Positions 21,896-52,648 of a DNA stretch of 64,000 nucleotides are shown here, piece by piece. The stretch is from Adineta vaga (lineage: Eukaryota > Animalia > Rotifera), in NCBI GenBank assembly GCA_021613535.1, contig CP075495.1:4278001-4342000 (forward strand). The letters run 5' to 3'. The stretch's first letter is position 1, and each line of letters begins with the position of its first letter. Made by a program: the position numbers and the translations under genes. A model generated the notes under the pieces. That model did no database searches and was not told where the DNA came from. It saw only the letters and a program-made list of their open reading frames with translations.

Positions 21896-23376
21896 CTATC
21901 GAGTCGCTTTTCGTTTATTTGAACCTGTCGTTTGAACCACAGTATACGTATCATTATCATCTTCATTGTCAACTTCAGTTTGATTTTGAAAACTATGATT
22001 ACATCTTGGACAAGTAACTGCTCTTCGTTTGTAACTTTCTGGTTGAGCTTCTACAAAAAAAAACAGGAAACAAAAGACAGAACTGATGAAATGGAATACT
22101 ATTTTTTTACGTTACCAGTTAGTACTGACGAATAAACTGTTGTGTTCCACTCAGGAATACAAGATTGTCTATCTGAACTTATTGAACAAAATGTGATTGC
22201 TAACTGTGATTTTTCTAATTGATATTTTTGAATTAATTGTTTAGGATTTAATCTAACATATTTTTGAACGTCTGTTTTACTTGGATTGTCGATAGCATCT
22301 CGATATGGTTGAAATGGTATTAATGGTTGAAGTGATTTTAATGCATCTTGTTTTGATTTAATCAAAACCAAATATAATCTAAAATGTAATTATTTATATG
22401 TAAAAATATTTGTTAAGAAAGAAAAATTTATTTATTTACTTCATTTTGCCAAATTGATCACCCTTGACATCGAGAAATAATGGATTGCAATCTGGTATAT
22501 CTCCTCGTTCATTATCTTGTTGAAACATATATGGCATCAGATAACGATTACCAAATTCATCAGGTATGGTTAACCAATCGATTCGAAGAATACCGGGGAC
22601 ATTCACTGGAACCTAAGAAATTATTTAAATAGTTTAGAAGATTGATTTAGATTTCTATAATACCTGAACTGTCACAAAATGATTGCCTAATGCGTCCATT
22701 ATATATCGTGGTTTTCGTTTTCTTCCATTCTGAGCGAAATAATCACTTTTATAACGTGCTCGAAAGCATTCTTCTAAGTCATGAACGATAGCAATTGCAT
22801 GGGATTGTTCTTTCATATTTATTTGTGGTTGACCAACATCAACACATTGTGATAATAGTATTTGAACAGGACTTGATTGATGTTTTTTCTCTTTTACTAA
22901 ATAAAATGATCAAAAGTAAAATAATCATATGTTTTATTGACTCAATCACTTACTGGTATAATTTACAGGAAAATTATCCATCAATGCATGGTACTGATCT
23001 TGATCGACACAGGGATCTGAATATAGGAAACTGATTTTAAAAAAAATATTGATTTTTCACCATTTTTTACTTTGTTCATTCATTATATCAACATATGAAT
23101 GCGACTCAATTAACTCTTCAGATTGAATATATGAATCTACATAGATAGAAATTGGATCGTATTTTACTTCGTGCAATATGGTGTGGTATGCTTACCAAAT
23201 AATACATCTATGTCATCTAAATTGTCAGTTCCAAGACCAACTGGATTCGTGTTTATTCCTAGATCACTCAAGCCTAGTTCTGCTAAAACGTCAGCCTCAG
23301 TTATTGGGTGCGCAGTAAAACCACTAAATGCTTCTTCAGATACACGATCTAGAGGATGATAATTTTGATCAGCCAT
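21896..23376 (-). CDS. R1: divergent Rel-homology-domain protein, subfamily A (acidic N-term, RHD-N, CxxC, NLS; no IPT)
   Basis: Spliced exons give IAIVHDLEECFRARYKSDYFAQNGRKRKPRY...FVTVQ|VP...RIDWLT...YLMPY...YQLEKSQLAITFC...VTCPRCNHSF...NKRKATR*. Confidence 0.75.
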
Positions 23377-24202
23377 CAATTGAATAATTTATTCGATGTA
23401 CTTTTTATTTATAGATAACTAATATGCAGGAACAAATATCGATGATGAAGTATCAAAGTAAGTCTTTCTCACTTATGTTTTATTTAAAATAACTGATAGT
23501 ATGCATGGGATTCTTGTTGCAGTATTTATAAACGGGAAAAAACCAATTTTTTGTAGGTTTTTTCCACACGTATTTACTTCGGAAGAAACAGAACGAGAAA
23601 AAATGCATCGGATGACTAAGCGATGATGACGATGTGCCGTTCGCCGAAATGTAATGCAACATATTTCGACCAGTGTGAAAAAAAAATATATAAACTGAGT
23701 ACTATTTGATAAAGAAAAATGTCAGGATCATGATTGAACAGTATCATTATTCACTATTAAAACATTGTTGTTTTCATCATATATGTTACACGAGTCAGAA
23801 CAAAATAAGTGTAACTTAGGGTTATAGAAAAAATTAAAAACGGAGGTAATATTTTCATCAGTATTTCATCACTATTCGGTTGAAGTATATCAAACGAGAT
23901 TTCTTTTATCACTGTTTGAGTATACCATTGTTTCATCATTCGATACGATAACAACATCATTTTTATGATTTAGATACATGCAAGAATGTTATCTTTTCTC
24001 TCAAGATTTATTTATAATAAAAAATGAAAAAAGTTTGTTACATTGTCGAATTAAAATAAACTGAAAATAAATATAATGAACAGAAGAACTGTCATTACTA
24101 CATGTTTTTTTGGCTAAAATAGAAAAAAATCATGGATATTTATAAAATAACAATGTACACAAAAATGTAATCCTACTTTTTTTTCTTTTTTTTCACGACG
24201 AA

Positions 24203-25632
24203 TTATTTTTTTCGTTTTTTCACCACTTTTTCATGTCCAATATCATCTGTTGAATCTTGTTTTGGTTCAAACGAATGCGAACACTTTGGACAAGTAACTG
24301 ATCGTTTTTTCGAAGCGTTAGACGGTTCCTCTGAAAAATATTTAGAAAAAGAGAACATAAAGAAACATTTTGATTTATTTCTTACCAGTCATCACTGTCG
24401 AATAGACCGTTGTATTCCATGCGGGCCTGTACGATTTCCTATCTGGACCCAACGAGCACAATGTAAATGCTAGTTGTGATTTATCCAAATCATAATACTC
24501 AATTAATTGTTTTGGCGGCATTTTAGGAATTTGTAAAAAGTTTGAAGATTGCTCGACTGGTGGAAATGGTTGCAGTGGTTGAGCAGATATCACTTCACTC
24601 TGTTTTGGTTTAATCAAAACCACTTGTAATCTATATGAGAAAACAAAAGAATAGCATGCACATCAAAATGTAATTGAAAGATGTAATTTACCTTATAAAG
24701 CCTAAATCATCAGCTTCGATTTCTTTTACAATAGGATTACGATCTTCTACAGCATTTGATTTATTGTTCTCCTGAAATTTACCGGGCATCGAAAATCGAA
24801 TATTTCCAAATTTTTCGATTGTCACCCAATCGATCCGTAGAAGAATTTTAGCACTGGGTGCAACCTATTGATTATAAACATATGATTATGAATTAAAGAA
24901 AAATTACACGTTGTAAATATTACTTTCAGTGTAACGAAATGATTTTCATATTCATCAGAGACATATCGTGGAGGATGCACATTTCCATTTGACGAAAAAT
25001 AATCACTTTTATATCGTGGCTTATAAGTTGGTTCTAATTTATTGACAACTTGAATTTCGCACGATGAAGTTTTCGATTGTGTCACTGTTTTGGTCTTGAC
25101 GGAATTTGAAAGTGGAACACCGGTAGATTGCGATGCTACTTGTTCACTTTGAACTAGAATCATATTAAGTATCTCGATTAGATAGAAAACATATATATAT
25201 ATATAAAGCATTCTTACCAGCAAGTTGACCGGTCCAATATGAATTAGTATCATCAATAAGTTGCTGATTAATATAATTATTACCATCATCTATTTCGGAA
25301 AAAAAATGAAAACAAGAAACACTTTATTCATATACTCTTTACCATTCGATTCAGTCGATGCAGGAAGGTATTGATCGAATTCGCTTTTGTCAAAACCACC
25401 ATCTGGAAGACCTATAAATAGAAGAAAAAATGGCTCTGGAATTCAAGAGCAAATATTTATTTCATATCTTACCAATAAAAGTAATCAAATCTCGCAAATT
25501 GAGATTATTCGTGAAAGAATCATCACTCGTTGTATTCAATCCTATTTCACTCACTGCAATTAATTCTTGAATTTCATCACCAACTGGATTAGTTCGAAGG
25601 AATTCTTCTACTGATATCACTTCCATTGTCAT
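24203..25632 (-). CDS. R2: divergent RHD protein, subfamily A
   Basis: IQVVNKLEPTYKPRYKSDYFSSNGNVHPPRY...FVTLK; YDLDKSQLAFTLC; VTCPKCSHSF; ends VVKKRKK*. Paralog of R1. Confidence 0.75.
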
Positions 25633-26485
25633 ATTGATCAGTATAAAAATAAAAAATAATCTAAAAGAAACTCTTTCAATATATATATACTAATGAAAGT
25701 AATGATGCTATTGCGTATATTTAAAAAAAAACACTTGTTTTTCCCTACTCACTGCTTCACTACGAAGAGCTTAGTCATAACAGAAGAAGAACAAGAAAAA
25801 AATAGTTGAAGTAAAAGAATCGTGATATACTTCATTTAACTTATCTCAGATTTTTGAAATACTTATTAATACTAATGTCATTCATATTATGAATGATTGA
25901 TAATATCTGATTAAATGCTTAAGAATATATACTTTTCATAACCGACTCGTAAAACTCCAACTGGATGATTCACAAAATAAGCACTGTTTACACTATAGAG
26001 AATAATTTACCCATTAGTAGTTGTAGACATTCTTTTTCTTTACTTTTTTCTATTGATTTCATTCTAACATTACTTATGTAATAAAAGTAGTTTCGTTGTA
26101 GAAAAGAATGACGGCGAACTGTGAGTTATTGCGTTTTCTTTCAATGATATCTTACGAAATGATTCGATATTAATAAGAACTATTAGCATTATTTTTATTG
26201 CCCCTTCTTTTCGTCTGTGCATAGAAATGTCATCATATTAGAAAAAATGAAGTAAATGGATGTTGCTTTTTAAGTTGATTATTTATTACTTTTTATTTAA
26301 TAAGTAGTTGTAGAGAATATGATTAAATAGTTGGAAAAAAGAGAAAGCAATATCAAAAAGAGACAACGATGATATAACGTTGAAGGTCAATAAAGTGATA
26401 ATCGGATGTGTATATGTATACAGTATATGTGGACGAAGACAACGAAAGCTATTGGCATGAATCAATAATAGTAGAAATCTTTTTT

Positions 26486-28437
26486 TTAAGTACTTTTTTT
26501 CTTTTTATTCGTTTGGTTGTTTGTTTTCGCCTAGAAATATTTCAAAAAATAGAACTTTTTAAACGAAAAAAAAAGTCGTTTTGATATACTTTTGTAACGA
26601 TTCGGGATGACTGATTTGATGTTTTCCGTTTAGTCCCCTTTTCTGTAGCGGAAATATTATTTGGATCAAAACAATGTTGACAATTTGGACAGCTGATTGT
26701 CTTAACTGAAATCGTCGTTGCTGGAACTAAAAATTAAAAAAACAAAGGGTTTATCTTTAAATAATAAAGAAACAATTATCTATACTTGATTTCGTATTTG
26801 ATACAGCTGATGATTTAGTTGGTATTTCAGTAATTACAGATGAAATAATCGTTGTTTCTGAATGAATATCAAACGAACCATCTGGTAATTTTGTACATAA
26901 TGTAAACGCTATATGTGATTTATCGAGTTGATGTTTGTTAATTAAATCTTTTGATGGTAATTTTTCATCACTGATAATATCTATATAAAAAAAACAAGAA
27001 TAGATTTGTATCTGAAAACAAACGTTCTTTTACTCTGTATAGAACCAACTGTATCGGAAAAAGGTTTTAATGGCTGAGCATCATAAAGTTGATCTAATTT
27101 TGATTTAATTAACACGAGCAGAAGTCTGAAAGAAATTAATTAGAACGATTGAATTCTTTGTCGAAGTATTTTAAAGTAAAAATTTACTTCATTGAATCAC
27201 ATCCTTCGGATATTTGAACAGGTAAATAAATCGGATTTTGATCAGGAACTTTTATATCATCATGATTCGTTTGAAATTTATATGGACTATAATAATGTTT
27301 GTGATCATCGGTCGCTATGGTAAGTAATGCAACACGAATATATTTATTTTTTAAATCACGACTATATCCGATTGGTATCTACAATGAAGATTTATCATTA
27401 CAATATTTGAAGTTCAATATTTTCGTACTTTTAACGTAACGAAATGATTTCCATGATCATCGGCAACATAACGTGGTCGACGAACATTACCATTCTGTGG
27501 AAAATAATCACTTTTATATCGTGCTCTATATGTTGTTTCTAATGGAAAATGAAGTTGTAATTGATTACGTGTGGAATCTGTTACTGCTACAGACTGCGAT
27601 AATAATATAGACTGATCCGATGGTCCTTTTGCTGCTAGAAAAATGACACAAATAAATTCTCTAAAATGATTTCAAATCTCTTTTTGTTTTTAGGACAAAC
27701 ATTTTTCAACATGTGAACGAAGAACGGGTAATACAGAATTACTTGTTTTAATCATTACTGAGCATTCTTCAGAACTTTGAATCACTAAAAATAAATTAAT
27801 CAAATCAATCGTAGAAATTTATATACATTTGAAATTTTACGTTTAGTCATATCATTCGACTCCGTTGAATTGAATGAATTACCATCATCATTAAAACAAC
27901 CGAACAAAGGATTCGTTACTGAAGAAAAATGAACGATTAATTCTTATCCAATCGTATATCTAATACTTACTAGAAAATGACTCCGTGTCTCTTAAACATT
28001 CAAGTAAATCATTAAACGATTGACTTGAATCCGATATCATATTGTAGTCTAAAGAAAAATTATACAGATGAATTTCATATTTTTCTACGGTATATTTATT
28101 AACCTGTCACATTAATTTCACGGAATGCATCCGCATTATCAAAATCATAGTGACCAGGTGAACCTATATGATATAAATATTAAATGATTTAATTAGAATT
28201 TGTTTTATTTATATACGAATTTCTGCACTTGGTAGTGACGCCTGTATGGAACCTTTGATAAAAGAAGAAAAAACAAATACGAATTCATAAATAATCAAAT
28301 AAATTAATGTGATACGTACAAATTGAAAAAAGGAAGTCGGAATTATCCATCGAAAGATAATTATTTTCAATATCTAAAATAAATTCTCCATGAAAATTTA
28401 TCTACAAAATACATTCATACTCACTCTGTTCTGCCAT
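26486..28437 (-). CDS. R3: divergent RHD protein, subfamily A (many micro-exons; essentially absent from the ORF track)
   Basis: LQLHFPLETTYRARYKSDYFPQNGNVRRPRYVADDHGNHFVTLK (about 27430-27570); HYYSPYKFQ; HQLDKSHIAFTLC; ISCPNCQHCF...TKRK. Both ends approximate. Confidence 0.75.
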
Positions 28438-29267
28438 GCTTTAATTTCTATTAGAAAATAATGGAGTGAACAAAATCATGTCGTACACCACGATTAGTGG
28501 TGACGATTAACAAAAAAATAATTTATATATCTGAAGAAATCAAAAGAAGTAAGGTCAATTCAATTCACCACGCGCTGAATTTTTACTCCGCAATAAGATC
28601 ATATTGTATATATTTACAAATGGTACTTGTTTTTTTCTTACAGCATGCATTGAAAAAAAAACAGAACACATTCATTTTATTATGAGTGTTTCTTTTTTTC
28701 TCTTATTCTGTTCTTGGTTTTTTCCCACCAATACTCTTATCCTACTGTTCTTCGCTTGATTCTTCTTGTGTTTTTCTCTTTCTACAAGGTTATTTTGTTT
28801 TATGATATTCTCTATCTATGACTCAAATGTAACATTGACGTCACCATGTTGGCATTATAAAAGAAAAAGCGAATTACAAATCAAATCAAATATTGAGAAC
28901 GAAAAGAGATATATTTATGATTTATTTGAGGTGAAAATAAAAAAGAAATAAGACATATGATTGGAAATAAATAGTGAATGAAAAAAATACAAGAAGAAAA
29001 ATATGATGAGTAACGTGTACCTGATAAGATGAAGAATATACGCTACTGCGAATAAGGCCCTTCTGCAACGATAATTACGAACTATCGATGTACGATTTTT
29101 TGAATTGTTTTGTTTTCTGACTCGAAGTATGAGTAGTCTAAAATGAAATGAACTATTAATTATGAGTATAAAGTACTTTTGTATTATTCATTGATAGATA
29201 AAGTTTCTCATCTCTATCGAATGATACTTTCTTTTCTACTAATGTAAATATGAGTATACGTAAGAGC

Positions 29268-30812
29268 TTATACCGATGATCTAGTTTTCTTTAATGGACG
29301 AGTCATTGGCGTATTTATGCTGTCCACGTCTTCATCAGATTTCTGATCATTTGGCGAAACTTTTCGTTTGACATCTTTTATTGATGTTTTTTCTAAAAAA
29401 TGAGATATACTCATTGATATAGATTGATGTATATATATACATATATATCATTATTTTTCTGTACTTACGTTCACCAATAAGATTCGTTTCACATTTAATA
29501 TCTAAAATATGAAATGTATTCTCTTGTTTGACGGCTAATTGAAAGATAATTTTATAACAATTTAAATCATAATCATTGGTAAATTGTTTTCCTTTGGCTG
29601 TTTTACTAATACGTTCTTCATTGGGTATTGTATCTAAAGCGAAGAAAACAAAAGTGATATTTTAAGTAGAAATAATAGATATACATTTTTCTGTCATTCG
29701 TTCGTAGATTGATGTATCAAATGATGTTAAATTGAACGTATATTGATCAAATTTTTGACAAATAATAGATAAACGAGGAAATCTAATCCAGAAAAAGAAT
29801 TTTTGTTCGATTCAACATCATGTAAATTCTCATGATACTCACGATTTTTCACACATTTCAATATCTGATTGAGTTAATGGAACAAAAATGCTTCCATGAT
29901 CTAATTCAATGGCATCAGCTGTACGATATTTGATATCATTTACATGTACAAATGTTTTATGACTTGGATTGTTTGTTGAAGTTACCATAGTAATAACAAT
30001 ACCAAAGGTTGCATTTCTAATCATTGATGCAGCTGTTAAATCCGGTAACTATTTATAAAATTTAAGATAAAATCAAAGTGAGAAACTAAGTTTAGCACTA
30101 ACCTGAATAGTTACGGGATGCTTTTTCGAATCTGGTAAAAATCTTGCACCATCACTTGCATAACGTATACGTTGATCAGGTTTAGGTTGTTCCTTAACGA
30201 TCATCATACCATCTATAGTCACATCAACGTCGAGTTTTGTTGTTGTTTCATTATTATGATTAGACGATATAATCTAATATAACATAAAAAAGTATTTTTT
30301 TTGTGAGATGATAGATAACGTACTATTTCTTCTTGTAAAGTATAATTCAAATTCTGACTGAATTCATTTTCTACTAAATGTTGATTCGTCATAATATCAT
30401 CATTTTCTATTCATACATTTATGATAATATTCAAAATCAACTTTAGATATATCAGAACTGATTTACCTAGGATAGAATCTAATTCTAAAGAAATGAGAAA
30501 ATATTTCATTGAAAATACTTAATTCAAAACATACGTGAATGTGTATTCAGAGATTCTTCGAATATCAATGGTATATCGAAACTGAGATCAGTCAATATAT
30601 TTGATTCGAGACCTTGATAATTTTCATCAACAAATTGTGTAAAGTTATTCGACATATCTTCCTCTTGAAGTAATTCTTTTGTATAGAATAGAAAATCGCC
30701 ATCTGTATTTATTTGATCGACTAGAATTCATGAGAAGTAAAAATTCAGAATAACCTTGAATTTATATTCATTTTAATCTTTTTAACATACATGCATCCAT
30801 TTCTGACAACAT
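29268..30812 (-). CDS. R4: divergent RHD protein, subfamily B (RHD-N only)
   Basis: GMMIVKEQPKPDQRIRYASDGARFLPDSKKHPVTIQ (about 30103-30210); FVHVNDI; FPRLSIICQK; YDLNCYKIIFQLAV; tail KRKVS...RPLKKTRSSV*. Confidence 0.78.
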
Positions 30813-31377
30813 CGTATTTATTCTTATGTAGAGATAGAAATGATTTGAGCTGCTGTTTAATTCGCTTTTCGATTGTAAAATGATTGCTCAGAAAGCAGCT
30901 GTTTGTATACATTTTCATTTTTACCCAGTTTGTGTAAAAAGTTTGTGATGCGAGTGACTAACGGATGAAAATTGTTGTTCTATGAGTCAAGAAGAAAAAA
31001 ACTATTGGTGATAAGAAGAAAGTAATCACAAAGCAAGTACATACGAATAGATGACGACAGTTTGTCGAGAGAAGAAAGAGTATTTTTTCTATTGATAAAC
31101 TATAACTATACATGGAGACGTTGTTCTCTTCTTCAAATAACTTTCTTCTCAACATGGGAAAAATTGTTGATGTACTGAAAGACTCTGTAAATAGACTTGT
31201 CCTTTTATTTTCATGAATAAATAAAAAGAAAAAGAAAAACTAATTCAAATGAAAACTGTATGCGGATGAGGGCCTTAGCAAGAATGAATTAGTTTGACTT
31301 CATTCATAGCTGATCCTTTGAATCATAGCCTCTTGATTATTATTTAAAAAAGAAAACTAAGTAACAATCATGAAAAT

Positions 31378-33016
31378 TTAGTTGTCTGAAACAACATGTG
31401 TTCGGCAGGAAACACCGGTTGTAGACCATCGATCATTTTGTTTAATCATTAATTCACAAGCAATTTGATATTGATCGGTGTGATATTCACGATCGAATTG
31501 TTTTGCTTTTTTCATTTTGGATAGCTTGTGTTCATTTGGAATTGTGTCTGAAAAAGAATACGTATCATTGTTAATATATAGCAATAGAAATAATTGAAAA
31601 ACATACATTGATAAGCATGATCAACGCCAATTAGAGTATCATACGGTGTTAGTTCATAGACGTAATTATTGAGCAATGCTTTAATAATAGATAAATGTCG
31701 AAATCTAAATTCATTAGAATAGATAATTTATAGTTTATATCTTTTTTCTCCTACATTTTTCTTCGATTACGAATATCTTCTTCTGTCAATGGGATACGGA
31801 AAGAATGTAGTCCATTTTGTACAGCATCTTGTCCATTGTAAGATATTTCGTGTTGATGAACATAGACTTTGTGTTGAGGATTGGAATGTGTCGTTAATAT
31901 TGTACATTCAATCCAAAATGATTGATTCGATTTTGTCAAACAGTCTGTTAAAACCGGTAACTGAAACGAAAAAGAAGAAAATAGTTGGAAATAAAAGTAA
32001 TTTCGATAAATACTAACCTCAATTGTCATCGGACGTTTTCGCGATTCTTCTAAATAACGAATTCCATCAGAACGATAACGAAAGCGATGACTAGCTTTCG
32101 GCTGTCGATGCATTCGCATAATTGGATCACCATTACGATGCATTGCTTCGATGATCGCTGCAAGATCAACAGTTTCAGAAAACTGATTCACCGAACTTTG
32201 TAACTACAACAGAAAATTTATCCATCGTTTCTATTCCGAAATAGAAAAAGATCGCAGTCATTTAGTTTACATAATTAGCAATTGTTGTAATCGCTTGTAG
32301 ATGATCATTGTCTGTAGTTGCATTGTCAATTGCTTGTATGTCTATAAAAAAAAATTCTATTCTATTCAATCCGACGTGATCACAAACCTGTTGTTGATTG
32401 TAGAAAATCTTCTTCTAGATTTGTCGATGATGCTGGTAATTCTAAAATGATTCGTACGTGCAGTGAAAGAAAAGCATCGTGACTATCTCATCAGCCATGA
32501 ATATTTCCACTGACAATAGCATAAAGAAGGGGCAACTGATTTTAATTTTTCGAACAAAAAAAGAAAAAAATTGATTCGCCATTCAAGTACGTACCTAGTT
32601 CTTTAGCCATTGAGAATAAGTCCGATAAAACAGATGTATCTACACAAATTGATTATTAAATTGAAATTTAATTTCGAAAAATATCTACCATCTAGTTTTT
32701 GATAGTCGATCGTGGGTATTGATGGACTCGGCGAATTTTTCGTTGGTAATGTTGCAGGATTTGACATTCCAAGTTCTATGAAGATTCTATTACTTAATTT
32801 AGAATAGATTGCAATACTGATATTTACCTGTACTAAATAGTAATTGATCAATAGCACCATGAGAAGTATCGAATAAAAACAGATCTTTATCCTCAAGCAC
32901 CATATTTGAATTGTTTGATAGTTCATATTCCCAAGCTAAACACAAAAACAAGATAAATCACATAGAAAACAATTGGATAAATAGAGAAGCTCACGTTCAA
33001 ACTGTTCCAAATCCAT
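31378..33016 (-). CDS. R5: divergent RHD protein, subfamily B
   Basis: PIMRMHRQPKASHRFRYRSDGIRYLEESRKRPMTIE (RFRY as in NF-kB); VYVHQHEI; FRHLSIIK; YHTDQYQIACEL. Confidence 0.78.
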
Positions 33017-33459
33017 ATTAGTTGTGTTTATATGTAATAATTATAATCTAAAACAGAATCGAAATGTTTTTCATGAATTATGTATAATATACGATGGATC
33101 AAGATGAAAATATTCTTATGAGTGTCAGTTGAGTAACATTAAGAATCTTAGAATAAAATTCACAGTAACTGCATTCCTACTTATCAAGCTCAGGTAGGAA
33201 GTAAAGAATGTAAAAGAATGAAATCCAGTTAAAAACATCGTTTGTAGATAGATGTCTCCTTTTCCATACAAAAATTCTTATTTTATCGATGACAAACTCA
33301 TCAGATCCATCTAATTTGTATAGCGCTTTAGAAATAATCGAATAGATTAACATTTGAAGAATGGTTAAAATCATGGTTATTATTAAGAGAAAAAAAATCT
33401 GCTTCGCTTGAAGTGAAGAACAAACGAGACGTGAATAAGTTTTATTTATCGAAATTTCA

Positions 33460-35129
33460 TTATTTTGATTGAGTTCGAATTATCTAGAAAACAAAATGTT
33501 TTGAAGAAAATATATTATGTTAAACGAAAGAAATAAAAGAACCTGCTTACCGGAAGGCTCGTTGATAATGAGGAGGATTTTTTGATTTTCTTAGTTGATT
33601 TTTGACGTGGTCTTTCATATTCTTCATCAGTATCATCAAAATTATCTGTTGTGACTGATCGTTTCAATGATGTCTTTGGACTGGTTTGATTTTCTTCTAA
33701 AATAAAAAAAATATCAAATCAATTTTATAACAAAAAGTAACTTATGGTTTGAGCTACTAACTTTCATCCATAAGATTTGTTTCACAGGCTATATTGGTAG
33801 GATACCAAGTGTTACCTTGCTTAATCAGTAATTGACAAGCGATTCGGCTTGATTTTAGATGATATATATCACGAAACGCTTTTGCTTTAGCCACTATACC
33901 TTTCGCATTTTTATTCTCATCTAATAAAACTTCAAAGTCGCAATGTATTCAATTGTTATTTAGAAGACAAATTACATACAAGCTTCAGATTGATTACTTG
34001 TTGACAATGGATCATATGGTTTTAATTCGAATTTGTATGCATCCAATTTTGATTTTATGATAGATATACGAGCCAGTCTAAAAATAATTGTGCAAGTCAA
34101 TGAATGAAAGAAAGAAACGAAGTCCTACTGCTTGTATCCTGCTTGTATATCTGCTGGCGCTAACGGAATACGTACAAATCCATGATCACATTCAGGTAAA
34201 TCATCTGCATGATATTCTAGTTTATCTATATGGATATATGCTTTGCCTGTCGGATTATTATTTGATGTTATCAAAATTAATTGCAGCCAAAATGATTGGT
34301 TCAAATTCATTTGACAGTTTCTTAAATTTGGCAACTATAAAAAATGAACTAAAATTGATTGACAATATTCTGTAAGATCATACTTTGATGGACATAGGTT
34401 TTGATCGCGATTTTTCAATGTGACGTTTACCATCACTTTGATAACGTCGACGAATGTCTGTTGGCGGTTGTATCTCCACAGACATAATTCGATCCTGAAC
34501 ACTTCTATCTAGTTTTTGTACATCAAGTTTATCCAACTCTTCTACGATCCATTCATTTGACATATCGCATGACTTCAAAGAGAAATTCCCACTAAGTTTC
34601 ATCAAAAAAAAAATATCAAGTGAAGTACGAACTGGATTTTCAAAAGCGAATTTATCATCATCCAGCATTTCATTAACTTTACTTTCCACATCTAAAAACA
34701 AACATTTTACATTGTTCAGAATATTATGACATAAGAATTTCAACTGACCATATGGAATTATAATGCTTTCTTCACTACAATTGGATTCTATATAGAAGGG
34801 AGAATAAAATAAGGTACGCAAAAATCTATAATAGATATACCCTCGTTATAGAATGGTAAAGATGATACCACCGATCGCTCGTCACAAATATCTGTTACTT
34901 TAAAAAATATTGAATTTAATAAAAAACTATATTGATGAAAAAATGAAATTATTTACTTTTGCTGAATGAAAATCCACTCTTGAGATGTTGAGTAATACTG
35001 TGTAAGTCCTGGGCCGATTTTAAATTAATATCATTATTGTCATTATTGTTTTCTTCTAAAAAACAGGATATTATACGAAATAATAGAAATTTATAAGTCG
35101 AATTTACCATTCCATGGTTGAGAAGCCAT
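33460..35129 (-). CDS. R6: divergent RHD protein, subfamily B
   Basis: IMSVEIQPPTDIRRRYQSDGKRHIEKSRSKPMSIK; AYIHIDKL; RISIIKSK; YHLKSSRIACQL; acidic/basic tail DDTDEEYERPRQKSTKKIKK. Ends approximate. Confidence 0.75.
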
Positions 35130-36845
35130 GTATTCACAAATCTGAAATCTTTATTTTTTTGCAATTCTGAGCAAACTTGTATACGACAAAACTGAAATTG
35201 CAACAAGGAAACTTTGGTTTTTCATCTAAAAAGAAATGAAAAAATCTGATTGGCGAATAATAATCTCATATTCTTGTTTGACGGGCGTTTGAAAATAGGT
35301 GTCTCAATTTCTCGAAAAATAATATTTGATCGGAAACTTGTTATCTTTTCCAACTTGATTTTGATATTATAACCAAACAATTGGATTTATCAAGATGAAC
35401 GAGAAAGGAAATTGTGAGTTTTTCCAGTTGGAAAATTCCAGCTGGAATAAAAAAACATTTACCACATAGTACACAACAATGACTCATGTCTTTGAAACGT
35501 CATTTCTATATATATTTTTCTTTTTTTTTCCTTTTCTACTTAGTTATTGTGATTTGTAACAAATTCAATCCTGTTAATGAATAAATATGTAAGTTATAAA
35601 ACCCACTTGAAATTTCTATGAGAGATTAAGTATATCTAGAAGCGAATCGTTGACTTATGAATCTAATAATTATAATGTATTCATTCGATGAAAAGATTGA
35701 TACGAAATTTTGATCCTTTCGGCTATATCAATCTCGTACTTATATAATGGATATTAGAATATTTTGTTTAAAATAAATTCATGACAAACGCAGAGAAAAA
35801 TGTTATAGACAGAATGCATCGATCTCGTGATTTCTTCTAAAATCGATTGAATTTATTGATACTTTCATCAATAATTTGGTTCTTCATTCTCATTCAGAAC
35901 CGACCTTGAAATTTGCAGAATAAATTTCAAAACCATGAATACTGAGAAAGTAACCACATGGGAAAATAATTTTTTCAAATAAAATTCATTTTTGTCCATA
36001 GAAAATACCAACACGTCCTTTCGAAACTTTCTGAAAATATTCAAAGTAATTTCCATACTTTATTAAGGTTGAAAAATCTTTCAACACATATGTCAATTAT
36101 CGATCAACAATGTTTTCGAGAGAAAGAAAAACGGTAAAATCCATGATTATTAATGCATATAGGTTTTTTCAAAAAAGAACATATTACATTAGAAAGAAAA
36201 TTTTTTTTATAAATTATTGAATCATGCTTTCAATTGTTAAATGCGGTTTTTTGAAATCATGCTCATAATAGAAAATTTTTCTTCCATTTTACACTTGTTG
36301 TCTACTTCAGACAGATTCTATTGACATTTAGATAGGCAGAAAAACAATCAACATCATAATAACCTATGAAAAAAAACCAGACATTCCTCAAATAATGACT
36401 CAACATAAATACATCGTATTTTTTATTTTGATTTACAACTGCACTCAGTAGAGAACATTTTCGTTGTGTTGATGGTCATTGATGAATATTAGAACTGAAC
36501 GTATATCTTTACATTGATCATTTCGATTTGAATTGAGAAAAAATCAATTCTATTCATTACCGTTAGTCAGTACGAAATGAAAAAAATGATGACTTATGTC
36601 ACGTTTACTTTCTTTTTGCATATATTTACTATTCAAGGTCATCGAAGAACTAGTAAAATAATAGGCGTTCTCTATTGATCATTACGAAGAAGAAAGACAT
36701 TTGTTTATTTATTCATACGAATAAAATAGAAAGAATATTTTGTACTCAATACAAAAAGATTTGAACACATTTTTCATTCCATTAGCTCTTTATTTGATTA
36801 AAAAAATATCGATACAAATAATTTTGAGTAAAATATTCCTAGTCT

Positions 36846-40976: not shown

Positions 40977-41330
40977 TTATTTGATGATAGATCTTGTTAC
41001 TGGAATAAACAATGAACGATGCTGTACTCTGGCATGGTTATTGTTAATAAAAATTGAACACGAATGAAGAAGTAAAAGTTGCTTATCACTATGTGAAAGC
41101 CTTGTAAGTGTTATACGCATCCATAATGATATGTCAGATCTAAAATGACTTCGAATATCAGACGTCAAGTTCTCATAAATGAATTCGAGATTATCAAAAC
41201 AAAATATAACTATTCACTTTGATAGTAATTGATTGTCTATTTGGTACAGTGACGTGTTTTATTCCATCCATTTTCATATCGAGCATATTGTTACAAAAAA
41301 TGAAGATATCAAAAAGACTAATGAATTAAG
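40977..41330 (-). pseudogene. Degenerate RHD pseudogene of subfamily B
   Basis: YARYE followed by a +1 frameshift, then DGIKHVTVPNRQSITIK|gt (cf. R5 RFRYRSDGIRY...PMTIE|gt), with an in-frame TAA just upstream. The next exon LWMRITLT...LLLHSCSI...HRSLFIPVT matches the equivalent R4-R6 exon and ends in a stop. Confidence 0.6.
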
Positions 41331-42516: not shown

Positions 42517-45329
42517 TTAAGCATTCTGCTGATTATTCGTTAAAAGTTCAAAACAACGTGTATTTCCATGCAATTGTGCTGATTGAGCCGGTGTTTCATT
42601 CATTTTGTTCTCCTGTTTCAATAGATTGTTTTTCAATTTTTCAGACAGAATTGCTAAGATACTTTCAATTGCTTCAGCACCTGCATCTTCTTTCACATTT
42701 GCAAGTAAATGTAACATATTGTTACCATCATTATCTTTCGCTTCAATCACATCTTCTCGTTCCTTCACAATCAACTCAATCACTTGCCATTCATTACATC
42801 TTGCACCAACTAATAATACTGTTTCGCCATTTCCATTTCTTTTCTCTAACAGATTATTTGGTTCACGCATATTAGCCACTTGTTGAATTATCGTCGATAC
42901 TAATGGAATATATCCATGTTCAATAGCATCATGTAATGGTGGTGGATTTTCGTCACAGGTTGATAATAGAACACGAGTTCGCCGAAATAGTTTTGATGGA
43001 TCATTTGTTCGAACAAATGCGACTAATGCTTCTTGTAATTGATTGAGATATTTATCGAACTTAGCAGAACTATCTATCAGTTGAGAGAAGAGAAAGAGTG
43101 AGATGAAGTATTGTGAATAGGATGCAATGTGTCACAAACCATCGGTTGTTGTTGTTGTTGCCATTCTTGCTCTTGTTGTCGACGCAAATGATGGTTCTTT
43201 GTTTTTCTGATGAAAAAAATAAAAAGTATAGGCGAACATGATGGACAATAAAGAGAGAAGAGAACAAACCTCGTCAAGTGTGAGTTTACTCATGTTTTGA
43301 ATGATATCACCACCAGAGTCATCCTCACAGAAAAGGTCGGACCCACATCGTCTTTTATTGCTATTGTACAGCTGATTTGACACCGTTCTCTGTCGACAAT
43401 TTGGACACTCATACATGATTATTTTCCTCGCTAAAACACATATTGGTTAAAGCAGATCGATAGATCCACATACTAAAATGACATACGTGTCACATATGTA
43501 AAATCAATGGGAGCCAAATCGAAACCATCTTCATTAATGATCATTTCCACTTTAATATCTTGATCTCCAATAGGAAGTGAACATGGTGGTGCCAAAAACG
43601 AGAATGTTTTCTGATCCACAACAGAGATCTTATCGACACGTATTAATCGATTTAAACCAAAATTAAATAAAATATAATAGCCTTCAAAAATAATCAAGAA
43701 ACTTATTTGAGTATGAGAAAAATACAAACCAACTAACTTATCTTTTTGATGAGGTGTGGCATAACAACTAATATTTCATCGCCACCTCGATAATCAGCTT
43801 TTTTTGGTACACATTTGATTGAAGTAGACGTTATGTGATCAGGACAATTCGTATTTGATCCTTAAGAAAGGAAAAGAAAAACTCTATCACCATCTTCGCA
43901 CATTTATACGTACTTGCTCTATCTGTTGTTATATCAGTCATAACGTCAGATTCAATCGATGTGTGCCATTGTGGAGTTGGATACGGTTCACAATCTAATC
44001 GTTCAGCAATTGTAAAGAAAAGTTGAGACTTTCCCAACTGATATGTCTCAATAGTTTGTTTAACATTTTGTGAATTTTCAATACGTTGTTCATTCGATGA
44101 ACCTAAATATACGAAATTAGTATCGTATATTGTATCAATATAATATCTTAGTTGTTCCTACGATTGAATAGTATCATAGATCGATACGATCGTAATTCTT
44201 CTTGTCTCTTTTTAATTATAGTCAGTCGAAAACTAAACATATATATATAAGCATATGTCAAAACTAACGAGAAACAAAATCATAAATGTAACCATTACCT
44301 TTTTTCACCGGACTTCATCTCCTTGTCATTGACACGAAAATAGAGAGTATTTTGTTGAGATGCATGTTCAAAAGTATCATTATCTATTGAACTAAGCTCA
44401 TATGGATGAATATAATGATTATGTACTGTATCACTAGTTACAGTAACAAGATTAACTTGAATATATATTTTCCGATCTAAAGAACGCCACGCGTCTGGAA
44501 TCTAGTTTTTACAAAGAAAAAAGATTTGATTAGTTATGAAATTGTATAAGATACGATAAATAGTAAATTTATATTATTTCAAATTAAACTTTGAAATAAA
44601 TACTTTATTATTGTTCCATGTATTTTGAGGAAAACTACACATACCCTAATAGTTGGATATTGATGCATTCTGCTTCTTTGTCCTGTACGAATAAAACGAT
44701 TTGGTTGACTATTTTGATTGCCTTGTTCGCAAACATAACGTCCACGATAAAGTGGTTTTGGTTGAGCTATTACTTTAAGTTGTTCATTGTTGGATCGATC
44801 GAATGCGTTTTGTAAAGGAGCCATAATTAAAGGACTCGTTTGCGGTTGCTGATTATTCAAATCAGAAAGTAAATCATTGAAACTATCATCAATACCTTCT
44901 AATCCTTCTGCAGAAACAGCATCGGAAGCAAAGCCTGATGAACTTGAAGAACTTTGACTGTCTGAGATAGGAAATTCGAGACTATTCGTATTTGTAGTAT
45001 CGTTATCTAAAATGTGTATATAGATTATTTAAATAACAAAAAAAAATTAATGAATTATTGCACGTACTCGTATTATTATTATTATTATAAAAAAATGCAT
45101 CTAAATCTTAAAATAGAATTTAAAAATCAATTTTTTTAATATCAATCAAATCTACTTTCTAATTCGGTAAAATGCTCTGGTTCCACGTTTAATAAATCTG
45201 GTTCTAGTAGAAGTATGCTATCGGCTATATCTTGATACAGTAACAAATCTGTTTCTATCGAAAGAAAGATTATACAATAAATTAACTCTACTTGAATGAA
45301 TAAATACCCGAATAGTTTAAGCCAGCCAT
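42517..45329 (-). CDS. R8: NF-kB p105/p100-like protein, subfamily C
   Basis: LKVIAQPKPLYRGRYVCEQG...YPTIR; HYIHPYEL; IPT KCVPKKADYRGGDEILV...FSFLAPPC; CPNC; NKRR; pre-ankyrin helix; ankyrins GETVLLVGARCN, GNNMLHLLA and NETPAQSA. Confidence 0.87.
42673..43280. repeat. Near-identical dispersed duplicate, copy 1 (partner 49834-50440)
   Basis: Nucleotide-level near identity with 49834-50440, including introns. Confidence 0.93.
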
Positions 45330-46366
45330 TTTGTTCGTTGTGCAATTTTGATAAACAATTTTTGATGGTATGTTAGAGCGAATAATGTTCCTTCCGCTTT
45401 TATACGAGGAAGATTTAGATAAACGTAATTGCAAGCAGTATTTCTTTTTAGCTCATGACGTGCTGGAACTTTCCCCAGACAGAACGAAAGAAAAACAATA
45501 CAATGCGATACATGCGAAATAACAAAATATAGGTCTCTCTCGATAAGATAAGAACATTAGTAGAGAGACGTCCGAGCAGCATACAAAACACGATGGTATA
45601 CATTACTGAATAGATTCAGGTCATGCTTGTAATCAAAGAAAAGGATAAAGTTTAAGATAGTATTAAGTATATCAAGTACTTTTTACAATAACGGGAAATA
45701 AGATTAGAATAGAAGTAATGAACAATTCAGTGATGTTTCGTTGTTATTTAGCTCTGCTGAATACTGATGAGTACGATAAGTAGCTGAATATAGTGTTTAA
45801 TCTTTTTACAATTTGAATCATACATAAGAAATTTAATATAGATCGATCGATGCATTTGATATTTGTCAGTAGACTATGAACTTTGAAAGATCAATATATA
45901 TTTGGCACATTTCATATGAAAAACATGATTACTGAAGATAATATTATAATAAAAGAGAAAGTATCAGCTAGAGATGTGCTTCTGATTGAGAGAAACACAT
46001 TGGTAAATATTTGATTCATTCATTTATATCATATTAGAATATTAGACAAGAAAACCTTTTCATGTTGTCTATTGGAATTATATACTTATTTCCAGCATGT
46101 TCTTACATATAAAATTGTTTTTTTATTTTCTCTTTTTGTTTCATATGACTATTTTGATGAGAAACTTGATAAGGATCACTTTTTTTCATGCAATTTTATT
46201 GGTTCGTATCAATTTAAATGCCATCATTTAATCACATAAAATCAAAATACATAAACATAGATGGAAAAGTTGGGAGAAGAGTAGGATTACAAAACATCAA
46301 AGCATCATATTCCTGAATAAAATAAAGAAAGACCGGGTTCAGACAAAACAATCTTGTGAAAGAACA

Positions 46367-49362
46367 TTATTCATTCTCTGCATCATCATCATCATCATCA
46401 TCCGACGAACTTGTATCGTCGGAAATGTGTTGTAGAGGATAAATTGTTTGTAAATATTCCGTTATATCATCAAGATGTAGTGATTGCGCTAATTCCATTG
46501 GTGTCATAGTTAAATTACTTTGATTACCAATTTGATCTAATTTTCCGTCTTCAATTAAATATTTAATCATTTCTAAATCACTGTAACGAACAGCAAGATG
46601 AATGAGATTATCACCAGTTTGATTCTTTAATTCCTGTACATTGTTTTTGAAATATTTCAGAATATTTTTTGTAACTAATAGATTATTCTTTGAAATACTT
46701 AATTGTAATGGAGTTCGATGATCTTGATTTGGATGATCGAATTTTTCTTGAATTGAAAATGATTTTTTCAAACAATAATCAACTATTAAATCAATTATTT
46801 CAGTTGATATTGAATATAATGCCATGATATGAAAAATATTATTTTCCTTTTCATCTGTACAGTTCATCAATTCTTCCGAATCTATTTTCTCTAATAATAA
46901 TTTAACTATTTCTACATGATTGAGTCGAACAGCATGTAAAAGTGTATTTTCGCCCATATTGTTTTGGTTTTGAAGAATATCAATAGAAGCAATAGGAATA
47001 AATTTGGATAAAATATCAATATGATTTTTACTAATAGCAACATGTAATGATTGAGGTTGTTTTTTGATAAAAGTACGAGATAAACGAAGAAGTGGACCAT
47101 CATCATTATTTATAAATAATGACTCCACAACTTTAGAAAGTATTTGCATAATTCCATCCTTAGGATTTTCATTGACTTGAGTAGTTTGTATTGGTGAGAC
47201 AGGAGCTGAAATAATAATACAAATGAAAAGTATATCTTGACATTTATTCTCTGGAAGTATATTCGAATGAAGAATAAGACAGCGCTGCTTACCAGAGTTT
47301 GAAACTGTTCCTGCCGCTGCTGCTGCTGTTGTTGTTGTTGATGATGATTCAGGTAACTATGCGAAATATATAGTTTTTTCGAATGCATTGTGAAAAATGG
47401 AGATGTAACTTACAGGTTCAGATAATGATTCATGAAGTTTAGGAGAATTACCATCATTAGGTACAACACCATCATCCATATAAAACATATCAGACGCCAT
47501 ACGTTTATTTGGTCTGTTTGGTGTTGCATTATTTTGATTTATGATAGCATTCAATTGACAATTTGAACATTGATTTACTAGTAAAGCGAAACAAAAGACG
47601 AATATTTTATTTGAAGGAAAAATATTGACATTATTCCTTAAATTACCTGTTGGCATATAAAAATATGATATAGTTCCTATTTCACGAGTATCTTGTCGAA
47701 GGATAATATTCACCGGAATGATTTCATTGAATTGAAAAGGAAATATAGGTATTTTAAATGAGACAATTTGATCTTTGATAGTCAGATCGTTAACTGGTTG
47801 TGACCAATGTGGATTGACAGTATCACATTCGAATATCACTTTTAATACTGTAAAATGTAGTTTAAAAATAATAATTTCAAATCATAATCAATTCTATTTT
47901 ACTCACCTCCATATTTTTTTGGTTCAAGTTTTTTATCCGTCAAGATAATAATCATCTCTTCGGAATGTGTATTTAGACTGTACCGAGGTGCATACTTATA
48001 CACACGACAAAGAGGGACAGATGTATTTGTTCTATTGTTTACTGGTTGAGTATTATTTTCCGAATCTTTTCCTTTCGAATCAATTTCTATCATAATTTCA
48101 GAGAAAGCAGTAGTTTCTAGAAATGGAGTTATACATAATGTTTGATCTTGATCGACTTCTTTTTTAACAATAGTAAATGCTAGTTGACTTTTTTCAAGAC
48201 TATATCCTTTCTTCAATTGTTTTGGCGGGAGTTGTTGTGATTGAGCATTATCTTGTACATTTGAATCTAAATTCCAACAACAAGATAATTAATTCTTTCT
48301 TTTTGTCATTCAGTTTTCATATTTACAAACCATAACAATCGAATATTCGTAAATCTCCATACGCTTTCAATTCATTCTGTAATTTCTTTACAATTCGTAT
48401 TGATGGAAAGCTACAATATAAAGTTGAATAACTTTAACAATTGATAGAATTCTTCCGTACCTTTTAGTACCAGTTATATAATCTTCTTTCTGAATAGGAA
48501 CATAAACTGAATTATAATATAAATCATTTAATTGATCGTCAGTCGTATGCTCGAGTGAATACGGATGGATATAACGTAGATTAGTTTTATCGTTGATGAC
48601 TGTTACAAGACATACACGAACGTGATATGCTTGATTAGGATCAAGATATTTTTGTGGAATCTAAACAAATAATAGCAAAAGTTAATTCAAATCACACGTT
48701 AAACATACTCGAATAGCTGGTCCATTGTAATTTGAATTTTTAGTACGATTTTTTAATACACCTTGACGTTGATCGTTGTTGTTATAATCAGTTCGATAGC
48801 GTAGTTTTTTTCCATAATATGGTTCAGCAATGATTTCTATTTGTTCAGAATATGATTGCGTTAAAGCAAAGTCTTGAACACCAGCTAAATGAAAAGAAAA
48901 ATTCGTTATGAGAAATTGATTTATTCTAATATACTATTTGATATTTCTTGTTGATTTGAATTCGAGTTATTATCTGGAGAATAACCCGCTGGAGTTTGTG
49001 CATCTAAACCTAGGCTACTAAATCCTGGTGTTAACGGATCGAGATTGAGAAAGTTCTCTAAATCTAAAATAAAAACTTAATCTTAAAGAGATTTTTCTTT
49101 CATTTCCAAACCAGCATTGGTAGTGAAGTCAGAATATTGTCCTATAATGAGAAAAGATTATTAATATAATATTTTTTATTGATATTTCCATACAAAAAAC
49201 TATATTACCTATTGAATCTTCGAAGAATGAGAGCGATGTACTATCGAGAAAATTGGAATCTAGTTCAACAAACCAACAAAACTAAATAGATTATATTCAT
49301 ATATTCTTCTTATTATTACCAGTAGATAAATGGGTACTGCTTTGATTATTTGAACTTGTCAT
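46367..49362 (-). CDS. R9: NF-kB p105/Relish-like protein with full IkB-like tail, subfamily C
   Basis: IEIIAEPYYGKKLRYRTD...GPAIR; RYIHPYSL; YSLEKSQLAFTI; IPT RVYKYAPRYS...EEMIIIL...VSFKIPIFP; CSNC; RPNKR; polyQ; about 6 ankyrins (GENTLLHAV, ENNIFHIMA, HRTPLQLSI, GDNLIHLAV, TMTPMELA); acidic PEST-like end SDDTSSSDDDDDD. Confidence 0.87.
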
Positions 49363-49650
49363 AATGCTGTTTCAATAAATGTAATCTACAATGAAAAATC
49401 TATTTCGATATGAGAATATATATCTCTTTTTTTTCTTTTTATTATTTATACCGAATATATATATACATATATATACATACTGACTTTTTTGAAACAGGGA
49501 AAAAACAAGCTTTGATTTGTTAACACATTTGAGTCATAGAAACAACAGTATTTTCGATAGGTTGATGATTATCGAATGATTTTATTTGAAAAAAATTGAC
49601 AGAAAAACAGAATATGAACATGAAAGAGACACACATAGATTATATTTATC

Positions 49651-52648
49651 TTACAGACTAACTAAATAATTATTGATTTCATTCGAATTTGCCGCTTTGC
49701 TTAATAAACTCAAACATTGGGTATTTTCATGGGATTGTGCAATGTCTTTTGCGACTTGGCTTTTTTTATTTTCTTCTTTTAAAAGTCGCATTTTCACATC
49801 AATAGGTAAAATCTCGAGGAGATTCTTAAGTGTTTCAGCACCTGCATCTTCTTTCACATTTGCAAGTAAATGTAACATATTGTTACCATCATTATCTTTC
49901 GCTTCAATCACATCTTCTCGTTCCTTCACAATCAACTCAATCACTTTCCATTCATTACATCTTGCACCAACTAATAATACTGTTTCGCCATTTTCATTTC
50001 TTTTCTCTAACAGATTATTTGGTTCACGCATATTAGCCACTTGTTGAATTATCGTCGATACTAATGGAATATATCCATGTTCAATAGCATCATGTAATGG
50101 TGGTGGATTTTCGTCACAGGTTGATAATAGAACACGAGTTCGACGAAATAGTTTCGATGGATCATTTGTTCGAACAAATGCGACTAATGCTTCTTGTAAT
50201 TGATTGAGATATTTATCGAACTTAGCAGAACTATCTATCAGTTGAGAGAAGAGAAAGAGTGAGATGAAGTATTGTGAATATGATGCAATGTGTTACATAC
50301 CATCGGTTGTTGTTGTTGTTGCCATTCTTGCTCTTGTTGTCGACGCAAGTGATGGTTCACTTTCCTTCTAATGATAAAAATAAAGAAGATAGGCGAACAT
50401 GATGGACAATAAGGAGAGAAGAGAACAAACCTCGTCAAGTATGATTTCTCTCATCCCTGAAACGATAGCTTCAACAACGGGGATGACGTCATTAGATTCC
50501 CGTGGTCTTTTATTGCTATTGTCTGTTTCTCTTGCCATCATACTTGGCTGACAATTTGGACACGCAATCATAGTAACTTTCACCGCTAAACATAGAAACA
50601 AAATAGAAAGATGAAAGAGTCCTATGTTCGATGAGACGTACGTCTAATATATATGAAGTCGATATAACCTAAGTCAATATCATTCTCATTGATCACCATT
50701 CGTACTGTTAAATCGTGATTACCGACGGGAAATGGACATGCTGGTGCGAAAAAACAGAATGTTTTTTGATCAATAGGTGTGATATTTGTCACTACTATTG
50801 GTTCAGTTAAAGGAAAATCAAATATAATGCTATACGCTGCAAGAATGAAAAGAAATTATTGATAAGTGAAAAAATGAAGTACAACGCACTTTTGTTTTTG
50901 ATTGAATGTGCCATGGTGATTGCTATCTCTTCACCATCTTGCCATTGAGCTTTGCGTGGAATACATTTGATTAAGTTGAGAGCTGTATGATTAGCATGAT
51001 TCCTTGCTAATTCTTAAAGAAGAAAAAGTAGTAATACATTATACCTAAAAGGAAAACTAACGTTTTTTGTCAGCTTCTTCACCAACCATAATTTTAGATT
51101 CAATGGCGGTATGCGGTATGGTAATAGGAATTGGTTGCGAATAAGTTCGTTCAGCAATAGCGAATATAAATTGAAATTTGTGTAATTGATATGTAGCAAT
51201 TATCTCTTTCGGGTTTCCTATGTCTGGAACATGTTGATTGCCAAACAGATCTAAATTTACGACTCTGAATAAGATGATCCCACATTATCTTATAGAATTT
51301 TTCTTGGTTCTCAGAAATCCTATGTAATTGAATGCACTATCTATCTATCAGGTTTTCATATTGCGTCATTCAATCAAAGGAAAGAAGGATTGTGCACGAA
51401 AATCTTTTTTATTGAAGTATATTATGCACATCCTTATCATGAAATTCAATGCATTTTATTATAGAAAGTGGATAACCAATATATATATATCAATTGATAA
51501 AATTCCGAAGAAAATTTCTATCAAGGATATTGCACTGTTGAATTTTATGAAAACGTAGTTGATTCTCATCGCATTTTAGTCTACGCGTAACTTCAATATG
51601 ATTGTGATTGACTATATACTTACTTGTTTCATATTTTCGTAATGGTCCGTATTCTTTCAAATTTTTTTGAAGCATTACTGTTTGAGTTATTTGGAATCTA
51701 AATAGATAGATTTTAGAACAGGTTTAAATCAATATGTATCACTTTACTTTTTCTCACAGGTATTGAATTCTTCCGGTTGAATAGGAAAATACAAAGAATT
51801 GTTACCATCGTCAATGAAGTCATTTCCTTCGGCACCAATTTTATAAGGATGTATATAATGTTCTCGTATTTTATCTGTTGTAATTGTCACTGGTGTGACT
51901 TTAATATATAGTTCTCGTGACAAATCACACCATTTTCGTGAAAACTGTTGAAATAAATTGTAGATATGTAGAAGAACTACTCGCTATTTACCTGAACAGT
52001 TGGATATTCGTATCTAGGATCTGCAAGACCAGTTCGAATAAAACGATGACCTTGCCCATTAGCTGTTTTTGAATCAGTAGCATATCTTAGACGATAAGAT
52101 TCATTTGGTTGTGCGATTATTTTAAGTCGATCACCATTTTCTGCGTCAGATATATTAGGCAAGATGTTTATATTCGAAATTGCGCTTCCTTCATTATGAT
52201 ACGCGGGTGGTGTATCAACATTGTCAAGTTGAGGTAAAGTACCCCCAGGATAATTCTGCAGAAATTCTGTAAAATCGACAGGATATTCAAAATCTTCAAG
52301 AAAAAGTGTTTCTGTAATCGTCGATTGCTGTGGAGAATTGGAACTACTACCATTAGATGTTCCAACACCTTGTGGAGTTAATATTGAATCTACACATAAA
52401 AATATTTTTATGGAAACAAAATTACTTTTGATAAAGTCTTGCATACTTTGCGAATCTAAACAATAATTAAGATTACAAAAAACTTGAATCTTTGTGAAAA
52501 ATACATTTACCAAGAAGCTGGTTTACTGCTTCCATAATTGGCGAAGGTATATCAAGATCCAGGCCTAGTAACAAAAGATAAAAAGATGTATTGTGAAAGA
52601 TTTTTTCGTCAGTGAACAAAATTTACTATCAAGAATATTGTGCGGCAT
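49651..52648 (-). CDS. R10: NF-kB p105/p100-like protein, subfamily C
   Basis: RLKIIAQPNESYRLRYATD...RYEYPTVQ; HYIHPYKI; IPT KCIPRKAQWQDGEEIAI...FCFFAPACP; CPNC; NKRPR; ankyrin exon shared with R8. Confidence 0.85.
49834..50440. repeat. Near-identical dispersed duplicate, copy 2 (partner 42673-43280)
   Basis: Same sequence as 42673-43280 apart from a few substitutions. Confidence 0.93.

Follow-up and report, generated by a model that had tools for sequence, protein, structure and literature searches.

The window analysed here is a 64,000-nucleotide stretch of the genome of the bdelloid rotifer Adineta vaga (contig C2, positions 4278001–4342000; the genome measures 100.8 Mb on six contigs, with a G+C content of about 30%). 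On its minus strand, between positions 21896 and 52648 (about 31 kb), lies what is very probably a tandem array of ten intact genes for transcription factors with a Rel homology domain (RHD), together with one relic. Invertebrate genomes usually encode only a few NF-kB/Rel factors. The defining feature of these proteins is a domain of two parts, in which a DNA-reading half (RHD-N) is followed by a second half (RHD-C/IPT) that makes the dimer. The genes are named A to K in 5′ to 3′ order along the minus strand, D being the relic; A, B, C and E form type 1, F, G and H type 2, and I, J and K type 3. An earlier reading of the stretch from its letters alone (the sequence-only reading) had placed ten such genes and a pseudogene on this strand, and they are indeed present there.

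Exon architecture and splicing

A recognition exon carrying a conserved (R/K)xRYxx(D/E) motif was found in all ten genes, with the exon border just ahead of the intron. Within the recognition loop the second arginine and the tyrosine are invariant, the first position is R or K in nine genes, and the acidic residue is E in genes C and E and D in the other eight; the Rel-type cysteine, as in Relish and p105, is kept in gene C only (RGRYVCE). The loop aligns with 'HRARYLTE' of NFAT5 and 'MRFRYKCE' of c-Rel. A homologous 'HPY/VH' strand exon is likewise found in every gene, and after it come the 'hSIIK/LVLIK' and 'SQLxF' segments. The common architecture described by the sequence-only reading holds for these elements in all ten genes, except that J and K fuse the 'LVLIK' and 'SQLxF' segments; its exon set was incomplete, since every gene has further 5′ exons and A, B, C and E also possess IPT and ankyrin exons. 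Six-frame scans of the whole genome recovered the cluster members with a signal well beyond chance, at expectation values (E) of 4e-19 to 1e-10 with the exon-1 profile and of 4e-23 to 1e-14 with the exon-2 profile.

RNA contigs from four public runs fall on genes G, H and I in discrete exon blocks, and their joints in I and H skip 50–67 nt with CT..AC ends, that is, GT..AG on the minus strand. For gene I (26486–28437), twelve CT..AC joints from the four runs define a 13-exon transcript running from 28437 to 26486 with an open reading frame (ORF) of 422 amino acids, whose length and frame were read by joining the RNA-defined exons. The phase-0 intron that had been predicted after the recognition exon is directly backed in this gene by an RNA joint following '...VTLK'. 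The RNA blocks of gene G lie at 31288–31545, 31755–31960 and 32019–32203; gene H has joints at 29633/29685 and 29782/29843, blocks separated at 30048/30103 and coverage up to 30720. For genes J and F, the annotated proteins match the window sequence exactly, over 7 and 11 exons respectively. Splicing is thus documented for three of the ten genes (G, H and I), where the RNA contigs agree with the spliced models. Across window positions 26500–32400 the RNA contigs differ from the genomic sequence at about 30 single bases, which recur across runs from several studies and are probably allelic or strain variation, not editing.

Long genes with a Relish/p105-like layout

The type-1 genes A (49651–52648), B (46367–48933), C (42517–44995) and E (36846–38972) lie on the minus strand, the first three with approximate 5′ ends. 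A full-length profile of bdelloid homologues was run, without search filters, against the six-frame translation of the window. In these four genes it matched RHD-N (profile positions 50–273), RHD-C/IPT (278–377) and an ankyrin module (437–616), the matched positions in gene A being 50–376 (RHD-N and RHD-C) and 437–613 (ankyrin). Pfam recognised ankyrin repeats on the last exons of B (46367–47149, E = 2.7e-19), E (36849–37454) and A (Ank_2/Ank, 49654–50232). An ankyrin module in the same polypeptide, a feature of NF-kB class I, was found in A, B, C and E only.

The RHD-C/IPT half of type 1 is seen in the window exons, in Pfam RHD_dimer matches to a paralogue and to homologues, and in a match to RelB. 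The paralogue of gene B on contig C5 matches RHD_dimer over positions 2–100 of 103 (E = 4.4e-4), and the distant homologue P0110 scores 31.7 bits against this family, the only protein to pass the cut-off of 28.3. For RHD_DNA_bind, the homologue P0080 gives E = 1.3e-4 and exon 1 of gene C aligns with positions 1–45 (E = 0.036); the Pfam scan of single exons yielded one weak RHD_DNA_bind match only. When compared with the PDB, the full-length type-1 profile was swamped by ankyrin proteins and was therefore trimmed to the RHD region. The trimmed profile, representing 13 bdelloid homologues, matched c-Rel at E = 4.6e-9, with profile positions 2–312 corresponding to chain residues 3–274, and the dimerisation domain of RelB at E = 7.7e-6; 12 of its 13 PDB matches belong to the Rel family. 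An exon-2 profile search of 1.84 billion representative proteins gave 166 matches, and the long proteins among them carry ankyrin repeats together with weak to significant Pfam RHD matches.

Between the RHD and a basic stretch, type 1 carries a CxxC motif (A 50540–50560, B 47550–47570, C 43390–43410, E 37440–37450). Judged from sequence, the four long genes share the NF-kB class-I/Relish layout, consisting of RHD-N, RHD-C/IPT, CxxC plus basic stretch, and ankyrin repeats. The domain order is that of Drosophila Relish and of p105/p100 (RHD-N, RHD-C/IPT, basic stretch, ankyrin), whereas the bdelloid genes are very divergent, with window exons below the Pfam RHD cut-offs, and differ by the conserved CxxC ahead of the basic stretch. 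Pfam showed no death domain on type-1 ankyrin exons or homologues. Genes A and C share a tract of about 637 bp in the ankyrin region (49820–50454 versus 42657–43293, minus strand; 95.8% identity over 638 blastn columns), outside which the two genes do not align as DNA by blastn; the tract probably reflects a recent gene conversion of the ankyrin module.

Short genes retaining RHD-N

The remaining six genes, also on the minus strand, are short. Type 2 comprises F (33460–35129; 368 amino acids, 11 exons, from the exact exon mapping of P0203, I4U23_007139), G (31378–32343) and H (29268–30720), the last two with approximate 5′ ends. Type 3 comprises gene I, J (24203–25632; 358 amino acids, 7 exons, from the exact exon mapping of P0052, I4U23_007135) and K (21896–23379, known from exon pieces and the partial database model P0028). 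The database proteins identical to two window genes, UJR25782.1 (I4U23_007135) and I4U23_007139, are labelled Adineta vaga; full-length analyses were run on database proteins, namely P0052 for gene J, P0203 for gene F and otherwise bdelloid homologues.

In genes F to K the RHD-N is flanked by a disordered N-terminus and, except in G, which ends directly after RHD-N, by a short basic tail. The homologue profile matched H to K at RHD-N positions only and gave no match to F and G at the listed threshold (E < 0.01). Neither IPT nor ankyrin was detected by this profile within 21000–36800 with filters off, profile positions 285–375 included. Likewise, hhalign comparisons with type 1 span RHD-N alone, at a probability of 99.8% (E = 3.4e-29) for type 3 and 98.7% (E = 1.7e-16) for type 2; types 2 and 3 accordingly lack the RHD-C/IPT half found in type 1.

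The N-termini of J and F are predicted to be disordered, with a predicted local distance difference test score (pLDDT) below 50 in AlphaFold2 (AF2) models, and that of gene I is net acidic (24 acidic versus 9 basic among 165 residues). The 'IKxK' backbone-contact strand is kept in the short forms. Basic runs after the domain (KKRKK, KRKTS...KKKK, KKIKK, KKTR), candidates for a nuclear localisation signal, occur in all ten genes of the array but G. Just before the basic tail, type 3 has a conserved CPxCxHxF motif (I at about 26600–26700, J at 24260–24300, K at 21980–22010), which reads CPNCQHC in gene I, is missing from type 2 and, in comparisons of the profile with PDB sequences, bears a weak likeness to half a C2H2 finger.

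AF2 modelling yielded confident domains (pLDDT about 85–95) at residues 131–320 of J (about 90) and 100–315 of F. In Foldseek searches of the PDB, the top 44 matches of both models were all RelA, p50, p52, c-Rel, RelB, Gambif1, TonEBP or NFAT. VIA alignment to c-Rel over 159 residues gave Z = 13.3 for J and 12.6 for F, the next unrelated folds being MYRF for J (Z = 6.5) and velvet for F (Z = 8.7). The RHD fold expected by the sequence-only reading is thus predicted for one short gene of each subfamily. In gene F a conserved helix precedes the RHD-N domain; a homodimer prediction for residues 95–316, which addressed the helix as a possible substitute for IPT, gave no answer in either direction.

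Assignment to the RHD family

Compared with the PDB, the exon-1 profile found RHD proteins in 31 of its 35 matches, all aligned at the recognition loop, and its best scores were to NFAT5 (E = 0.0017), NFATc1 (0.0069) and p65 (about 0.04). Together with c-Rel and RelB, these are the best profile matches of the array, and the NF-kB/NFAT RHD-N identity that had been proposed is borne out by them. The RHD-N fold is indicated by predicted structure in J and F and by the c-Rel profile match in type 1, and the recognition loop RxRYxxE(G) stands at the start of RHD-N. We regard the proposed identity as supported, since the structure, best-match and transcript tests all came out favourably.

Several observations weigh against this assignment. 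The best window exon reaches 14.5 bits where the curated Pfam RHD cut-off is 27, although such cut-offs (PF00554, PF16179) are detection thresholds and not structural features. The short proteins P0052 (J) and P0203 (F) have no Pfam match, the type-2 and type-3 profiles alone find no RHD among PDB sequences, and the AF2 models of J and F were built on shallow alignments of 15–18 sequences. Because the type-2 and type-3 profiles find no RHD in the PDB, membership of the short forms rests on profile–profile comparison and predicted structure. The exon-2 profile gave no RHD match among PDB sequences. A six-frame genome search with PF00554 and PF16179 gave no match either, but it carries no information because its controls were equally silent. 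A match to Cif in the PDB profile searches was dismissed as chance.

Among known systems, NFAT and NFAT5 (TonEBP) provide the best single sequence matches of the recognition exon and structural Z scores of 11.2–12.5. NFAT also sets the example of an RHD binding DNA in monomeric form alongside partner factors (PDB 1owr, 1a02). However, NFAT keeps the IPT and an N-terminal calcineurin-regulated region, whereas IPT is missing from the short bdelloid genes, whose N-termini are unrelated segments, predicted to be disordered and without a Pfam match (no search aimed at calcineurin docking motifs was made). In architecture, the genes of the array are nearer to NF-kB/Relish than to NFAT. The velvet factors (VeA, VelB, VosA) resemble the short genes in having a stand-alone RHD-N-like DNA-binding domain without IPT, and velvet is the next-best fold for gene F (Z = 8.3–8.7 versus 11.4–12.6 for Rel/NFAT). 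They are, however, a fungal family that dimerises through the velvet domain itself and has no sequence link to the bdelloid genes, and P0052 and P0203 gave no velvet match in Pfam.

Second cluster, dispersed copies and lineage range

The haploid assembly contains at least 23 intact-looking RHD loci. A second cluster of eight RHD genes lies on the plus strand of another chromosome (contig C5, 13099000–13130000, i.e., 13.10–13.12 Mb), and dispersed copies occur on C1, C3 and C6, so that the physical cluster proposed from the window alone is a genuine tandem array and not the entire family. The C5 cluster is collinear with the window, with four type-1, two type-2 and two type-3 genes in the same order. 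Type-1 loci number at least ten in the haploid genome (four in the window, four in the C5 cluster and two dispersed), compared with one or two in most animals.

A tree built from two concatenated exon-wise alignments supports type 2 (100/97) and type 3 (99/98) and recovers sister pairs across the two clusters: F with C5_5 (98/96), H with C5_6 (95/92) and B with C5_2 and C5_3 (99/99). Because the order is repeated and sister pairs cross between clusters, the three-type array predates the duplication that gave rise to both. Paleotetraploidy is known in bdelloids, and we infer that it was this duplication. In C5_2 the RY of the recognition loop is lost (LRTRDE). By appearance, the C5 cluster is flanked upstream by a gene resembling a FAD-linked lactate dehydrogenase and downstream by a phosducin-like gene.

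Some dispersed copies have features of their own. The type-3 copies at C3:3.37 Mb and C6:0.945 Mb each adjoin a large single-exon gene with apparent RNI-type leucine-rich repeats, beyond which more such apparent repeats follow; the two loci look like a gene pair duplicated across two chromosomes. Still more divergent RHD-N-like genes at C1:16.70 Mb (PYQRVRYDGE) and C3:6.695 Mb (FYHVRYLSE) may represent a fourth subfamily. At C1:13.328 Mb, RHD-N exons like those of gene E have no IPT or ankyrin exon visible within about 4 kb, and this copy may have arisen when a type-1 gene was truncated independently.

Beyond A. vaga, four to five tandem RHD genes lie within 11.8 kb in A. ricciae and two on one contig in Didymodactylos carnosus. 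Orthologues of the short genes, similar in length, occur in Adineta, Rotaria and Didymodactylos at 40–63% identity. All named homologues sampled come from these three bdelloid genera, in searches that depend on detectable sequence similarity and that distant relatives in other rotifers could escape; within this sampling, the radiation appears lineage-specific, as the earlier reading had suggested.

The relic and the flanking genes

Relic D (40980–41213, minus strand) is a lone, degraded exon 2 of type-2 appearance, with an exon-2 profile score of 65.3 bits and an in-frame TAA; no further exon was found at its locus. The array is flanked on the same strand by PEX19 (54240–55184; Pfam Pex19, E = 7.1e-24) and by a gene for an RRM protein with a serine-rich tail (20226–21152; RRM_1, E = 4.8e-13). 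The flanks had been named RNPS1 and PEX19: the latter is confirmed by Pfam, and RNPS1 is a plausible label for the former, given that Pfam supports RRM_1 alone. In A. steineri, a type-3 gene and an RRM gene are joined in a single gene model (P0223), which recalls this flank of the window.

Alternative explanations

The six short genes might be decaying, truncated duplicates of Relish-like genes, expressed yet functionless. Their lack of IPT and ankyrin parts would fit such a history, as would the presence of a true relic within the array and the high divergence of exons 1–2 (15–36% identity to the first, type-1 sequence). However, their ORFs are intact over 7–13 exons with correct GT..AG splicing, the loop R and Y are invariant and the domain is confidently folded in the models (pLDDT about 90). 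Each subfamily, moreover, is supported as a clade in the tree, is represented in the second cluster and has orthologues of similar length in three genera, and decay is accordingly very improbable. It is hard to credit that the short architecture stems from faulty gene models and that the RHD-N exons are in truth the 5′ parts of transcripts reaching the IPT/ankyrin exons of a neighbour. Genes on this strand are densely packed and fused database models do exist (P0213–P0215, P0152, P0223), but the RNA contigs of gene I span from the ATG to a stop in the last exon without an IPT, in F, H, J and K the reading frame closes at a stop after the basic tail, and the nearest downstream genes are again RHD-N genes, in a region (21000–36800) where no IPT or ankyrin match was obtained. 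That the short genes belong to another family of p53-like or Ig-like DNA-binding folds (velvet, STAT, MYRF/NDT80, p53) and are merely RHD-like is extremely improbable as well: such folds appear lower in the structure lists and no Pfam RHD match exists, yet crystal structures among the 32–33 Rel/NF-kB/NFAT entries score Z = 11.4–13.3, compared with maxima of 8.7 for velvet and 6.5 for MYRF. The recognition exon, in addition, aligns with the RxRYxxE loop of NFAT5, NFATc1 and p65, and hhalign ties the short genes to proteins that match c-Rel end to end.

A different question is what the RHD array serves. It could be a developmental patterning or housekeeping set, with a Dorsal-like use, instead of an immune or stress system. 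Rel factors pattern insect embryos, and a study of the response to fungal infection in A. vaga does not mention NF-kB among the responders. Conversely, large and fast-diverging tandem families are more typical of defence genes, and the Relish-type architecture is linked to immunity in arthropods; on balance we consider a developmental role unlikely, while taking it seriously.

Proposed mode of action and significance

By analogy with established NF-kB biology, the long forms would dimerise via IPT while their own ankyrin repeats keep them inactive, a block lifted by cleavage or degradation of the repeats; once released, they would enter the nucleus and read kappaB-like sites through the RxRYxxE loop. 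The short forms, which keep the base-reading loop (RxRYxxD) and the 'IKxK' strand, would have no canonical dimer interface and would not be maskable by an IkappaB module. Their most likely role would be to bind half-sites, as monomers or with the help of a partner, like NFAT with AP-1, and they might serve either as activators through their N-terminus or as competitors of the long forms.

More boldly and only tentatively, we hypothesize that two stable bdelloid RHD subfamilies consist of the DNA-reading half alone, free of IPT dimerisation and of IkappaB-type control, and that, together with about ten Relish-like paralogues, they form an enlarged NF-kB-type layer in an animal reportedly without canonical Toll-like receptors (TLRs). 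Under this hypothesis, the short forms could be monomeric half-site readers, partners, or dimers bridged by zinc through CPxCxH. A review of 2018 states that no rotifer immune pathway had been reported (PMC6043800), and according to another review canonical TLRs are absent from A. vaga (PMC8609888). A preprint on the bdelloid response to fungi counts some 120 proteins with a TIR domain in this species and makes no mention of NF-kB.

The sequence-only reading had called the system undescribed, which is true of one part of it. UniProt automatically names some orthologues of the long genes in other bdelloids 'Relish' or 'RHD domain-containing protein', and in view of these labels the long genes count as further members of an established type. 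For the short subfamilies, every database record seen says 'uncharacterized' or 'hypothetical', and a literature search on rotifer NF-kB/Rel genes found no paper, including none on the short forms. The family has been missed both by the current A. vaga annotation ('hypothetical protein') and by Pfam.

Taken together, one lineage carries at least 23 RHD genes, including two collinear clusters older than a chromosome-scale duplication, and more than half of these genes have dropped the dimerisation half while keeping the base-reading loop. The array thereby offers a natural test of what a stand-alone RHD-N is capable of, and it provides named candidate regulators for bdelloid immunity or stress tolerance.

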